Shown here piece after piece: positions 1 through 4,434 of a DNA stretch of 64,000 bases. Position 1 is the first letter of the stretch, and each line of letters starts with the position of its first letter. The notes beneath the pieces were generated by a model, which made no database searches, was not told where the DNA came from, and saw only the letters and a list, made by a program, of their open reading frames with translations. This stretch comes from Utricularia gibba (lineage: Eukaryota > Plantae > Magnoliophyta), in the NCBI GenBank assembly GCA_002189035.1, contig CM007989.1:7998001-8062000 (forward strand), written 5' to 3'. Both the position numbers and the translations under genes were made by a program.

Positions 1-296
1 GTCAACGTTGAGTAATTGCTATTTTTAATTATGTTTTACAAAAATCATTTATTGAAAAACGTTTCCAATAATAACAAGAAAATTTGCAGTGGTTATTCTG
101 ATATTCTTGGTACGAGGTTGGGTGCATGTAGGGTTGAGTTAAATTTGATTGATAAATGAAAAAATTGATTAATTGAAAGACGGTTCGATTTGTATTAGTG
201 AAATTTGGCGTAAATCAATTATTGATTAGTTCTATTATTACTGGATTAACTGTTTTTTAGATAATTTGATTAATTTTATCTTCGTTTTTAATTCGG

Positions 297-356
297 TTTC
301 GGTTATCAGTTTACTTATTTGATTATGGTTTCGTTTCGATTTCGGTTATCAGTTTA
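297..356. repeat. 17-bp direct repeat in an AT-rich, TTCGGTT-rich tract (possible degraded non-autonomous TE)
   Basis: TTTCGGTTATCAGTTTA at 297-313 and 340-356; surrounding 1-500 region is AT-rich with recurring (TT)CGGTT motifs; no termini identified. Confidence 0.4.
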
Positions 357-790
357 TATAGTTATTTAGTTATGGGTTCGGTTCCCTCAATAAGTTATTT
401 TGTAAATAACACAAGTTTAAAAACGTTTATACTTTTAGTAAACTATACATTATTTTAATATTTTATTAAAATTATTTTCGGACGAATGCAATCAAATACA
501 ATTGGGCCATACATGTAAGAAAAAGGAGGTTTCCGTAATGGGTATATTGATAACGTCCAAAATAAGGCCCATCTACATAATGGGTTAAAAGCCCACCAAA
601 ATTTTAGAATATTACGGAGTGCTTTATTATAATTTTTTAAGTTGTTAATAATTTGTATAAAATAAACAAATGTAGAAAGAATATAATAACCTTAATTTGA
701 ATTATTATAAAAAAAAAATTCAACGACCAAACTCACTCGAATTCATTTTTAAAAGAATGATGACAGCTGGATTGGTGGCCATTCTCCGGG

Positions 791-1798
791 ATGGAAAAGC
801 AGAGTAGCGCAATCGCCGACGGCGGACTCGAACCATGGGCTAACCTTCACGAAAAGGTGGTGATGGTTACCGGCGCGTCGTCCGGTATCGGCAGAGAGTT
901 ATGCTTGGATTTGGCTGAAGCAGGCTGCAGAATCGTCGCCGCCGCTCGAAGAATCGACAATCTGAAATCCCTATGCGCAGAGATAAACAACTGCGGGGGA
1001 CATCTTGCAAAGGGATCCAGACGCGCGCCGTCGCTGTGGTTCTAGATATCGGATCAGGCGCGGCGGAGGTTGAGGCCTCAGTGGACAGGGCCTGGGCATC
1101 CTTCGGCAGAATTGATGCTCTAGTTAACAACGCCGGCATCCGAGGTAAAATAGGTCTCCGGATTTTTCTTCAAGCATTTGTTGTATTGTGAATTCCATTC
1201 AGAGAACTTCCGCAACGTAGGGAGTATACACACCCCCTTGACTTGAAGGAAGAGGAGTGGAACGACATCGTTAAGACGAATCTGACCGGAACTTGGTTAG
1301 TATCCAAGTATGTCTGTCGGCGAATGCGCGATTCCCGCCACGGCGGCTCCGTGGTGAACATCTCATCCATCAGTGGCCTCGAGCGGGGGCACCTCCCGGG
1401 CGGTTTGGCGTATAATTGCGCCAAAACTGCCATCAATTCGATGACTAAGGTGCCGTTGGATTGGATTTGAATCAGATTGGAGTTTTGATTGTTGACGATT
1501 GAATCTGACTTGCATCCAGGTGATGGCTCTGGAACTGGGGGCGTATAACATACGAGTGAACTCAATTTCACCGGGACTGTTCAAATCGGAGATAACTCAG
1601 GGACTGATGGAAAAGGAATGGCTGAAGAATGTGTTGACAAAAATAGTGCCGTTGCGGAGCTCCGGGACGGTGAATCCGGCGATGTCTTCGCTGCTGAGGT
1701 ACCTCATCGACGACTCTTCCGGTTACATCACCGGCAATATTTTCATCGTTGACGCCGGAGTCACCTTGCCCGGCATTCCTCTCTTCTCCTCCCTTTAA
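791..1798 (+). CDS. Short-chain dehydrogenase/reductase (FabG-like SDR), 3 exons, two apparent 1-nt frameshifts
   Basis: TGASSGIG cofactor motif, NNAG, NISS, YNCAK (YxxxK) and RVNSISPG. Introns 1145-1220 and 1450-1519 (GT-AG). Frame is restored only by adding one base at the G5 run 995-999 and one at the C5 run 1233-1237. Confidence 0.85.
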
Positions 1799-2085
1799 CG
1801 CTTATAACCAAGCACAGTCCCATTCTGCAAAAAAGTGTGTTTGGTCAGACCCCTTCTATATCAAATAAGGGGTTAATTATTTAATAAATAAGGAAATACC
1901 CATTATTATGATTTTGATTGTTTTCCGACAATTAAATTTAATAATTATTAAAAATAACCTTTGACGGAAATAACCTTCCAGGGGCCCACAATCGCTATTC
2001 AACTGTTGTTCTTACACTACTGTACTCTTTTTACAAGCCTTTCTTGACTGCACAAACACCGGCATTGATACGTAACCAGCAACCG

Positions 2086-3900
2086 TCAGGATGGGAGGCC
2101 GCTTTCCTGCAGATCGGATTCGCTGGGAGGGGCGACCCTTTTCCGTGCAGGAAGTAGGGTTTCGATGAACGGGGGATACTTTCTTTTCCGGCCGCCGCGG
2201 GGCCTCGACCGGAACTGCTGATCCCACTCTTGGAAATCTCCCTACATGATAACACATGGTTTCCATCAGCCTATCTAGTCCGTATCATTCTGGAGGGCAG
2301 CCAGCCTCTTTCACAAGATGACAGCAGAAACTTACAGGGGTATAAACATGAATCCCGGATCGTTCATGGTTGTCCCGTACGTGTTTGAATGCAAATCTCA
2401 TATAGCAACCGGGCATACAGCAATTGTATGGCTTCAGCTCCATGTGTACAGCTTTAACATGCTGCTTCAGATTTGATGCCTGTAGAGGTGACAGGCTGAA
2501 TGGTGAAACTCTGGGCGAAACGAGCCAGACAGATAATGTGAGGGAGGCATGGCACTTACAGTTGAAAACGTGAGGGGGCAACCCTCGTAAGTGCAGCTGA
2601 CTCTCTCGTGGGGAGTTCCCGATTCATGTTTCCTCATGTGACGCTTAATGTTCTTCTTTAGTTGCTTGGAACCGCATTCTTTGCAACTAATATACTGATG
2701 ACTGGCTGAAATATGCTCCTTGAGACATTTCTCATTGGTGAAATACTTCATACATCCAGGCTCAGTACATAGAGCCTCCACACAGTCCAGTTTAACTGCA
2801 AGCATACATGATTTAGTGCTGGGCAAACTGACAAAACAAAAAATGCCATGAAAAAAATGAAAACCCACCATGAGAGCCTGCGTGTTTACGCAATCTGGAC
2901 GGGTGAGGAAAAACTTTTCCACATCCATCTTCTTCACATCTATACACGGTTGGGCCCTGAACACTAGCTGAAGTTGATTCATCATGGAACTCTTTGGCAT
3001 GCCGTGTCATGTTACCACGAACCGTAAACCTGCTCTTGCAGCTCTCAACGGGACACTCAAACAATTTTCCTTCATGTAGAAGCATATGTCTGTTCAAATG
3101 GTCCTTCCTTCGATAACTTGAGTTACAGTCACTGACAGGACATACAAATGGCCTCTGTAAAACAAAAGGCAATCCATTAGATTAGTGTTGAACGACCCTT
3201 ATCGGATGAGCTACCCATGTCCTTCTAAGCAAGCAATGAATCCTCAAATCCACAACAACAGAAGGCGTGATCGAGGCTTACTTGATGGAGCTTCCCAGGC
3301 AGTCTCCTGCCTGGTACTGGTCCAGTCAAGGCGAAAGAGCTGCCTCTTGCATTTTGGAGTACTTTACGTTGGGATCCAATGCCTCACGCTACAAGAATCT
3401 TCCAACAAACCCATTCAATCTGCAAGATATGTGCTTCAATACCAAAAAAAACAGAGACAAACGACAACAGCAATCTTATAAGTGGCAGGCAGGAGACGCA
3501 CGCACAAAAACTCAGTGCAGCAATAACGAAGAAGAAAAATACAGACCAGAAGCGAATGGCTCAGCATGTGCTGCTTCAGATGCGCAGGTTTCTGAAAACT
3601 TCTTTGACAGATTTCACAGGTCGTTAATTTATCACAAGCCTCCTCTTCATCGTCCCAATCCCTTTTCTTGATCTCGGCCTGCGCTTTCAGACAAACGTTA
3701 AACTAAGCCACACCCACATAACAATGGAGAAAAAAACACCCATCGGGCACAGGATCAGAACAAAAGCATACCCCATGGTTAGCGAGTACATGGGATGTGA
3801 TTAAAGACTTTTTCGATCGGCAAATTCCACAATAATCACAATAATATCTTCTGATATCTCTAAAAATCGGGCCTTCCCCTCCCTTCTCTTCGTTCGCCAT
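2086..3900 (-). CDS. TFIIIA: Transcription factor IIIA (multi-C2H2 zinc finger, 5S rRNA gene factor)
   Basis: Exons 3900-3772, 3678-3547, 3154-2869, 2795-2560, 2479-2336, 2241-2086 splice in frame. N-terminus KGGEGPIFRDIRRYYCDYCGICRSKKSLITSH, serial CxxC...HxxxH fingers, C-terminal RSRPRGGRKRK; stop TGA 2088-2086. Confidence 0.93.
3282..3419 (-). ncRNA. P5SM: Plant 5S rRNA mimic (P5SM) cassette/poison exon inside TFIIIA intron 2
   Basis: 138-nt segment bounded by TTGCAG| and |GTAAGC within the 392-nt intron 3155-3546. In-frame TGA at codon 12 (3386-3384). Sense sequence GCATTGGATCCCAAC...ACTCC and CAGTACCAGGCAGGAGACTGCCTGGGAAGCTCC parallels plant 5S rRNA (GCACCGGATCCCATCAGAACTCC; TAGTACTAGGATGGGTGACCTCCTGGGAAGTCC). 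Confidence 0.9.
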
Positions 3901-4020
3901 CCACAGAAGCAGTCTCCACACCGCACAGAATAGGAAACCAAGGGCACGCCAAGAAACCTCTTCTGAACTTGATACAAAAGCGACGGAGCGGCGCTGAATA
4001 AAAGACTACCTGTCAGAAAT

Positions 4021-4079
4021 TTAGGGTTTGGTGATGTTGGGCTGGTTTCCGGCCCACGGGCTTAAAAAATGAAGGCCCA
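4021..4079 (-). promoter_or_regulatory. Telo-box plus site II (TGGGCY) module upstream of TFIIIA
   Basis: TTAGGGTTT (AAACCCTAA on minus) at 4021-4029; TGGGCT 4038-4043; GGCCCA 4051-4056 and 4074-4079, about 120-180 bp upstream of the ATG. This combination is typical of plant ribosome-biogenesis genes. Confidence 0.65.
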
Positions 4080-4434
4080 TAATATAAAACACGTGCTATT
4101 TTGAAATTTAAAAATTCGATTACAAAATTTAAAATATTCAAAATAGAAACTAATTTTATGCTTCTTACACATTCTCAAAATGAATTTTTGAGAAATAAGA
4201 ATAATAAATAAAATAAATTGATATTCGATAACTTCAAAAAGAGGGGAGATGGCTTGCCTGACCAATGGTGTTGACAAGGCGGTTTACTCTTCTGTATAAT
4301 CCCATGTTTTTTGCTCGGTTTGAAGGTGTGGAAGGTTTCAATATCAATTGATAGAGGAGTGTACTGCTGCAAATTCTCGAATTGGTTGCCCTGATTCGAT
4401 CATCTTCTCTTGCTTTAACTCCAGACGCGGAAAA

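Follow-up and report, generated by a model that had tools for sequence, protein, structure and literature searches.

A predicted 5S rRNA mimic in a poison exon of the Utricularia gibba TFIIIA gene

The stretch considered here, hereafter the window, comprises 64,000 nucleotides of the genome of Utricularia gibba (GenBank assembly GCA_002189035.1, contig CM007989.1, positions 7,998,001 to 8,062,000 of the forward strand). All coordinates below are those of the window. Its minus strand carries a gene that the evidence supports as the transcription factor IIIA (TFIIIA) gene of a eudicot, the second intron of which would harbour a poison exon of the P5SM type, named after the 5S rRNA mimic of plants. 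Such a suicide exon of TFIIIA was reportedly described in 2009, in Arabidopsis thaliana and Oryza sativa, by Hammond, Wachter & Breaker and by Fu et al. By its sequence and predicted fold, the element of the window is a genuine member of this family. The system is thus a known one, to which the copy of this plant is a new addition.

The TFIIIA gene and its cassette exon

The exons of the gene were searched singly and the reading frames were derived arithmetically. C2H2 fingers are recognised in every exon, and exon-wise translation gives nine tandem zinc fingers, eight contained in single exons and a ninth divided between exons 4 and 5. Exon 3, compared alone with all solved structures, has Xenopus TFIIIA as its top PDB match (1tf6, E 1e-17). 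In a protein search over 1.8 billion representatives, the single-stretch matches at 50-68% identity were plant proteins, and the source names of the relatives read transcription factor IIIA (Triticum, Hordeum, Lolium, Aegilops, Gossypium and Cocos). The Pfam TFIIIA_zf-C2H2 match is below threshold (24.4 versus 27 bits). The original prediction, made from the letters of the window, had proposed a P5SM-type poison exon in TFIIIA. This proposal is borne out by the nine fingers, the 1tf6 match and a score of 123.9 bits with the covariance model R1 described below.

Counted from the ATG, exon 1 covers 129 nt (3900-3772). Exons 1 and 2 both end in phase 0, and the stop codon is found in exon 6 (2088-2086, minus strand). 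Intron 2, with its 392 nt, is indeed longer than its neighbours, the other TFIIIA introns being of 93, 73, 80 and 94 nt. Intervals of 134, 70 and 87 nt were rejected as TFIIIA introns, for they lie beyond the stop codon or in a convergent neighbouring gene. The segment 1824-766 was likewise discarded as TFIIIA exons 7-9, since it belongs to that neighbour, a short-chain dehydrogenase gene. TFIIIA has been reported to be single copy (PMC6164485).

Within intron 2, the 138-nt cassette that had been proposed on the strength of its splice sites is positioned between the exons for fingers 2 and 3. Its edges, ttgcag/AUUGAA and CAUCAA/guaagc, are of the AG/GT kind. Assembled contigs from four public runs (X1, X2, X5 and X6) were aligned on window positions 1-4300, and they derive from RNA because they are spliced. 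The joints 3677>3771, 3419>3547 and 3154>3282, which read CT..AC on the plus strand, that is GT..AG on the minus strand, occur in contigs of X1 and X2 (study P1) and of X5 (study P2). As the exact predicted boundaries recur in two independent studies, the cassette is included in mRNA in vivo and is a real exon. In the frame of exon 2 it is translated as IEWVCWKILVA and then meets a TGA, at the twelfth codon as previously indicated. Because four exon junctions follow this stop codon, the inclusion mRNA is predicted to be a target of nonsense-mediated mRNA decay (NMD). The intact nine-finger open reading frame (ORF) implies that the cassette can also be skipped.

A contig of run X5, which bears the same species label, comes from the other study and is about 99.3% identical, lacks 17 nt at 3348-3364 (minus strand AAGUACUCCAAAAUGCA). 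The deletion has AAG/AAG microhomology at its edges and takes out half of the L2 loop, the 3′ strand of helix P2 and a conserved AUG, in other words the arm mimicking the L5-binding part of 5S rRNA; the contig nevertheless still includes the exon. The contig may represent an allele or a homeologue; a reverse-transcription artefact is less likely.

Fold, relatives and likeness to 5S rRNA

With Rfam 15 at gathering threshold, the whole window gives no match. A P5SM model had to be built because Rfam 15 has none recognising the element. This covariance model, R1, was constructed from nine elements of other plants, with the window excluded. The covariance-model search that had been proposed as a check returned one match in the 64 kb, at 3392-3262 (minus strand), over the full length of the model (123.9 bits, E ~1e-28). 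Across 15 elements the R1 scores span 103-143 bits, the window element being mid-range.

The related TFIIIA loci were obtained via protein matches and one DNA pattern scan. They consist of Logan contigs (L001, L005/6, L007 and L018/19), of Fragaria x ananassa (L002) and of plant DNA in JGI metagenomes (L003/4 and L013/14). Every other plant locus fetched holds the aligned element with TFIIIA exon 2 upstream and exon 3 downstream, and the window element strongly matches in sequence the P5SM of ten other plant loci. A first metagenome pattern, anchored on both 5S-like blocks, had no match. With a second one, seven of nine contigs (L008-L012, L015 and L016) turned out to be chance matches in unrelated DNA and were discarded, and a search with exon-3 words yielded four fragments only. 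L018 was also considered as an inclusion transcript; it is unspliced DNA. Two complete tandem copies of the mimic are present in the same TFIIIA intron in Fragaria x ananassa and in the L013/L014 plant, each copy scoring 103-127 bits; R1 had been trained without the second copies of L013/L014. The second copy of Fragaria has a mismatch in P1 and is devoid of the distal donor discussed below. In contrast with these two plants, the window carries a single copy.

The interval 3282-3419 had been put forward as the element. This extent is correct for the cassette, but the RNA element itself runs from 3389 to 3265 and thereby enters the downstream intron by 17 nt, where the 3′ strands of helices P3a and P1 are found (Table 1). 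Folded alone, the segment 3392-3262 has a minimum free energy (MFE) structure that is exactly the proposed three-way junction (-46.6 kcal/mol, z -3.02, none of 200 shuffles being as good). In comparison, the fold of the cassette alone (3419-3282) is unremarkable (z -1.07). Thus, the 5S-like junction is predicted to form only with the intronic strands. In P2, two adenines bulge at 3354-3353 and the L2 loop occupies 3374-3359; in L003 the AA bulge is changed to AU with the pairs retained. P3b is made of CUUGA-UGGA paired with UCCAUCAAG. It is followed by an AGUA/GAA internal loop equivalent to loop E and by P3c, an 8-bp hairpin with a GAGA loop. The P3b/P3c arm shows pair probabilities of 0.82-1.00 in every folding context.

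RNAalifold predicts P1, P2 with its two-nucleotide bulge, P3b and P3c unaided. P3a is unseen by this program because the variable region is misaligned. When duplexes are folded sequence by sequence, P3a is found in every species and its extensions covary, as illustrated by GAGGCUGU/ACAGCCUC in L018 (0/500 shuffles as good) and by AGAGGCA/UGCCUCU in L005. In the pair counts, 94.3% of the cells are paired, versus 37-44% with slid partners. In the model-fitted alignment A4, which holds 12 distinct sequences, the corresponding values are 95.7% and 33-45%, with compensatory changes at five pairs; across species, P3a has three such pairs and P3c two. The covariation score beats 500 of 500 shuffles.

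Concerning the likeness to 5S rRNA itself, two blocks had been pointed out in the cassette and both can be upheld. With the cassette alone, the Rfam 5S_rRNA model aligns 3324-3286 (minus strand) to 5S positions 69-107, that is helix V, loop E and helix IV (13.4 bits, E 2.3), and it aligns end to end with the L013 element at 11.9 bits. Rfam gives no separate match for the 5′ block, which is a look-alike of helix III and loop C with a two-A bulge. Other matches of a permissive Rfam scan of 3000-3700 and of the cassette, to miRNA, CRISPR and lncRNA models, were set aside as noise. Compared with 5S rRNA (RF00001), the element shares the three-way junction, a helix III-like stem with its two-A bulge and the GGAUCCCA...ACUCC loop, and an AGUA/GAA internal loop of the loop E type that leads into a hairpin resembling helix IV. 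The GGAUCCCA...ACUCC block and the AA bulge are features of plant 5S rRNA as well. The element departs from 5S rRNA in scoring below the family threshold, in having no helix II equivalent, in its enlarged loop C (16-18 nt), in a P1 that is unlike helix I in sequence, and in its residence in an RNA polymerase II pre-mRNA rather than in an RNA polymerase III gene. Judged by sequence, it is a mimic and not a 5S gene, and its resemblance to 5S rRNA is real but partial. The string CCCAACGTAAAGTACTCC (3373-3356, minus strand) had been taken for a lineage-specific insertion relative to 5S; it is instead the variable L2 loop, of 12-18 nt across species. L2/P2 and P3c/L3 are indeed described as the 5S-like parts of P5SM (PMC3378873).

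Table 1. Position of the features of the TFIIIA locus, listed in the direction of transcription, and of tandem mimics in other plants
Feature	Position	Strand	Basis
Promoter-proximal telo-box AAACCCTAA (4029-4021) and three TGGGCY site II motifs (4038-4043, 4051-4056, 4074-4079)	4021-4079		Motif scan
TFIIIA exon 1 (5′ untranslated region, ATG 3900-3898, zinc finger 1)	3772-3955	-	Contig starts 3954-3959, splice 3771/3677, translation, C2H2 motif
TFIIIA exon 2 (spacer, zinc finger 2), 132 nt	3547-3678	-	Translation, contigs, zf-C2H2 26 bits, zf-met 27 bits
Intron 2 of the skipped isoform, 392 nt (127 + 138-nt cassette + 127)	3155-3546	-	Sequence arithmetic, joints
Cassette (poison) exon, 138 nt	3282-3419	-	Joints 3419>3547 and 3154>3282 in contigs of X1, X2, X5
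Predicted complete P5SM RNA element, 5S-like three-way junction, 125 nt, last 17 nt intronic	3265-3389	-	R1 match, MFE fold
P1 5′ strand GCGUGA	3384-3389	-	Pairs with 3270-3265; RNAalifold unaided; 97% of cells paired, 12 sequences
In-frame TGA, cassette codon 12, within the conserved P1 5′ strand	3384-3386	-	Translation, P1 coordinates
P2 helix and L2 loop, GCAUUGG(A)...(U)CC[AA]AAUGC (helix III/loop C look-alike)	3349-3382	-	RNAalifold, MFE fold; 100% of cells paired
P3a 5′ strand GAGGC	3342-3346	-	Duplex with 3277-3273, -10.0 kcal/mol, matched by 9/500 shuffles
P3b/loop E/P3c arm, CUUGA(C)UGGA...UCCAUCAAG (helix V/loop E/helix IV look-alike)	3281-3330	-	Rfam 5S_rRNA partial alignment, pair probabilities
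Cassette 5′ splice site in use, CAA/GUAAGC (3282/3281)	3276-3284	-	Joint 3154>3282, no positional ambiguity
P3a 3′ strand GCCUC, intron +5 to +9	3273-3277	-	Duplex folding, MFE fold, pair counts
P1 3′ strand UCACGC, intron +12 to +17	3265-3270	-	MFE fold, RNAalifold, pair counts
Site equivalent to the distal donor AG/GUUUGG of other plants, here GG/AUUUGA	3246-3251	-	Alignment A1, donor table
TFIIIA exon 3 (fingers 3-5)	2869-3154	-	Joints, translation, C2H2 matches, 1tf6 match
TFIIIA exons 4-6 (fingers 6-9): 2795-2559, 2478-2335, 2240 to ~1965	1965-2795	-	Joints, exon-wise translation
Tandem mimic copies	L002 3329-3452, 3594-3717; L013 9897-10016, 10544-10662; L014 2171-2290, 1585-1703		R1

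Position of the 5′ splice site and proposed regulation

The donor used by the cassette is embedded in the predicted fold. Its positions -3 to +1 belong to the 3′ strand of P3b, with pairing probabilities >=0.94 in contexts of 131 to 701 nt, and positions +5 to +9 constitute the 3′ strand of P3a. In other plants, a conserved distal AG/GU follows P1 at a distance of about 20 nt. Of the 11 other distinct elements 9 retain it, the exceptions being the second of the tandem copies in Fragaria and in L014. In the window, the equivalent site is not a donor because of a G to A change at +1 (GG/AU). At the proximal position a GU is missing from L003, L005, L013 and L018, and L001 and L007, the elements most like that of the window, possess both donors. 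Gossypium raimondii isoform X3 (XP_012442878) and the protein of Cocos nucifera (KAG1338430) are translated through the 3′ strands of P3a and P1 ahead of exon 3, and therefore the distal donor is used in these gene models. Related exons with the distal donor are predicted to measure 132-186 nt. The conserved P2 AUG of L001 and L007 gives an open, in-frame reading only if the proximal donor is used, so that this donor may be common to a wider clade, as far as the sequences of these two elements can tell. The whole RNA element is thus not enclosed in the cassette exon here, the exon ending at 3282 and the 3′ strands of P3a (3277-3273) and P1 (3270-3265) being intronic. This does not exclude membership of the P5SM family, because the element acts on the pre-mRNA.

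In Arabidopsis and rice, L5 binding leads to exon skipping (PMC3378873, where P5SM is used as a tool). L5 binds the mimic and promotes skipping, which gives the nine-finger TFIIIA, inclusion resulting in a truncated frame and in NMD (PMC3378873, PMC6164485, PMC8909551). The system, which had been presented as one of angiosperms, does occur in them but is not restricted to them, since it covers land plants generally (PMC3378873, PMC8909551). In the predicted fold of the present gene, P1 closes the junction, P2/L2 copies helix III and loop C of 5S rRNA, two-A bulge included, and the P3a-P3b-loop E-P3c arm copies helix V, loop E and helix IV. As in Arabidopsis and rice, free ribosomal protein L5 (uL18) would bind this mimic and cause the cassette to be skipped; the resulting mRNA would encode the nine-finger TFIIIA and thereby allow more 5S rRNA to be made. 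When L5 is lacking, the cassette would be included, translation would end after finger 2, and the mRNA would be a predicted NMD target. Two additional steps may be envisaged for this genome. Since the cassette 5′ splice site is inside P3b/P3a, the folded mimic, stabilised by L5, should hide the donor directly from the U1 small nuclear ribonucleoprotein. The spliced inclusion mRNA would lose the 3′ strands of P3a and P1, leaving no complete mimic.

With the P5SM of Arabidopsis and rice, the window element has in common the host gene, the intron separating the exons of fingers 2 and 3, a cassette with a premature stop, and the P1 / P2-L2 / P3a-b-c-L3 architecture, including a variable L2 and a variable P3a/b region (PMC3378873). 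It differs from P5SM elsewhere by an exon of 138 nt, as compared to 175 nt in Arabidopsis (PMC3378873), by its proximal donor inside P3b/P3a, by its mutated distal donor and by the lack of an in-frame AUG in the cassette. The purine-rich part of L2 is reported to be an exon-definition signal in Arabidopsis (PMC3378873). A looser analogy may be drawn with the TPP riboswitch of THIC and with the 45ABC element of RBP45 genes (bioRxiv 10.1101/2025.11.25.690383), where a conserved pre-mRNA fold likewise changes splice-site choice upon occupancy by a ligand or protein, in a manner coupled to mRNA decay; fold, ligand and host gene are different.

Considering these data, it may be proposed that the TFIIIA pre-mRNA of this plant folds at 3389-3265 (minus strand) as a conserved P5SM, with L5-bound skipping and NMD of the inclusion mRNA carried over from Arabidopsis and rice. 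We give this reading a probability of roughly 0.88. Several points weigh against it. The skipped joint 3154>3547 is absent from the assembled contigs of all four runs; as assembled contigs drop minor isoforms, this is however no evidence against skipping. Alignment A4 was fitted to the structure, and because most base pairs are invariant, the covariation rests on five pairs, a modest number although all point in one direction. In contexts of 190-701 nt only P3b and P3c are kept, the probabilities of P1, P2 and P3a falling to 0.17 or less because the 5′ part of the cassette competes; the predictions suggest that these three helices may need co-transcriptional folding or L5 to form. The window also has substitutions of its own at a few positions where all other species agree: L2 reads GUACUCC instead of GAACUCC, and an A of P3b is replaced by C. 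Finally, the Rfam 5S scores of 13.4 bits in the window and 11.9 in L013 are far from the gathering value of 38.

The low 5S scores and the unremarkable MFE of the cassette alone are what would be expected of a chance resemblance to 5S rRNA or of an intronic 5S pseudogene fragment. This notion is already refuted and its probability is negligible, for the same element has the same position in TFIIIA, with exons 2 and 3 flanking, in every other plant locus fetched, matches R1 at E ~1e-28 and is spliced into mRNA as an exon. More thought may be given to a relic, in which P5SM would have been inherited while the cassette would now be included or skipped at a fixed ratio, with no response to L5. Such a relic would agree with the assembly of the inclusion form alone, with the window-specific substitutions in L2 and P3b, with a displaced donor that deprives the mature mRNA of two strands of the fold, and with the X5 accession, where the 3′ strand of P2 is lost to the 17-nt deletion and the exon is still included. 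It is hard to reconcile with five helices that are all intact and with a mid-range score against a model from other species. The intact nine-finger ORF, which implies skipping, and the reported single copy of TFIIIA (PMC6164485) also speak against it, and we consider it quite improbable.

In another model, inclusion would mainly serve to make a shorter protein of the TFIIIA-7ZF type from a downstream ORF, instead of destroying the mRNA. A seven-finger protein made from exon-included mRNA has been reported (PMC6164485), RefSeq isoforms of 300 amino acids in Gossypium start inside the mimic, the proximal donor puts the conserved P2 AUG of L001 and L007 into an open, in-frame reading, and the inclusion form is the one assembled here. 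The reading frames of the window make this model unlikely: its P2 AUG belongs to another frame, which closes after 8 codons, the AUG of P3b is replaced by ACU, and the first in-frame AUG after the stop lies in finger 3. Moreover, whether the conserved AUGs are in frame varies among species.

Beyond the conserved P5SM behaviour, a more specific possibility would be that the L5-TFIIIA-5S loop has been rewired in this lineage. The donor would have moved into P3b/P3a and the distal one been lost, so that the L5-locked fold would occlude the donor, the inclusion mRNA would be a truncated mimic unable to hold L5, and no AUG would be left for a seven-finger protein. This proposal is tentative and we hold it to be doubtful rather than probable. 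If it were true, the X5 allele with the 17-nt deletion would be a natural test of the rewired loop.

A pairing internal to the cassette was also observed. Nucleotides 14-25 (GUUGGAAGAUUC) can pair with the 5′ half of P2/L2, UUGGAUCCCAAC (3405-3368, minus strand), and this pairing displaces P1, P2 and P3a in longer folds; in L001 no such complement was seen. According to these predictions, it would be either prediction noise or an alternative conformer.

Surroundings of the element and meaning for plant TFIIIA genes

Upstream of TFIIIA, the telo-box and site II motifs lie some 70-120 nt before the 5′ ends of the transcript contigs. The telo-box AAACCCTAA occurs four times in the window, versus 0.74 expected. 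Its promoter copy precedes the transcript start by about 70 nt, and beside this copy three TGGGCY site II motifs are gathered within 42 bp. This pairing is typical of the promoters of plant ribosomal-protein and translation-apparatus genes. It would tie the transcription of TFIIIA to ribosome biogenesis.

Downstream, the convergent short-chain dehydrogenase/reductase gene occupies 766-1844 on the plus strand (Pfam adh_short and adh_short_C2). A minus-strand GT..AG joint, 1959>1824, links it to the 3′ end of TFIIIA in the contigs from X1 and X5, and those from X2 and X6 keep the two transcripts apart. The joint would be either that of a long spliced TFIIIA 3′ untranslated region antisense to the neighbour or an assembly merger of convergent transcripts. 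In the same gene, all three covering transcript contigs, from two studies, have an extra G after position 994; this G is needed to keep the dehydrogenase frame continuous from ORF 791-1045 into ORF 973-1191. A 1-nt deletion error of the assembly or a frameshift allele is probably the cause. Twelve seemingly extra letters at joint 1145>1233 were examined as a micro-exon; they are window positions 1222-1233, displaced by an aligner boundary effect. Elsewhere in the window, two pairs of ORFs of equal length, 32989-33849/62741-63601 (286 aa, ~29.7 kb apart) and 41335-41985/46487-47137 (216 aa, ~5.1 kb apart), are probably repeated elements.

P5SM has been known since 2009 and is reportedly present in every land plant studied, so that one more plant is expected, and the shifted donor is to be seen as a minor variant of a known system. 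Three points are of modest and specific value. Rfam has no model of the element, and R1 and A4 recognise it cleanly; it can therefore be annotated across plant genomes. On another hand, the position of the donor with respect to the fold is not fixed, being proximal and inside it in the present plant and distal in Gossypium and Cocos, which matters for the way in which bound L5 brings about exon skipping. As the usable start codon of the debated seven-finger protein varies by lineage and is absent here, the species would offer a natural control for seven-finger translation from the inclusion mRNA.

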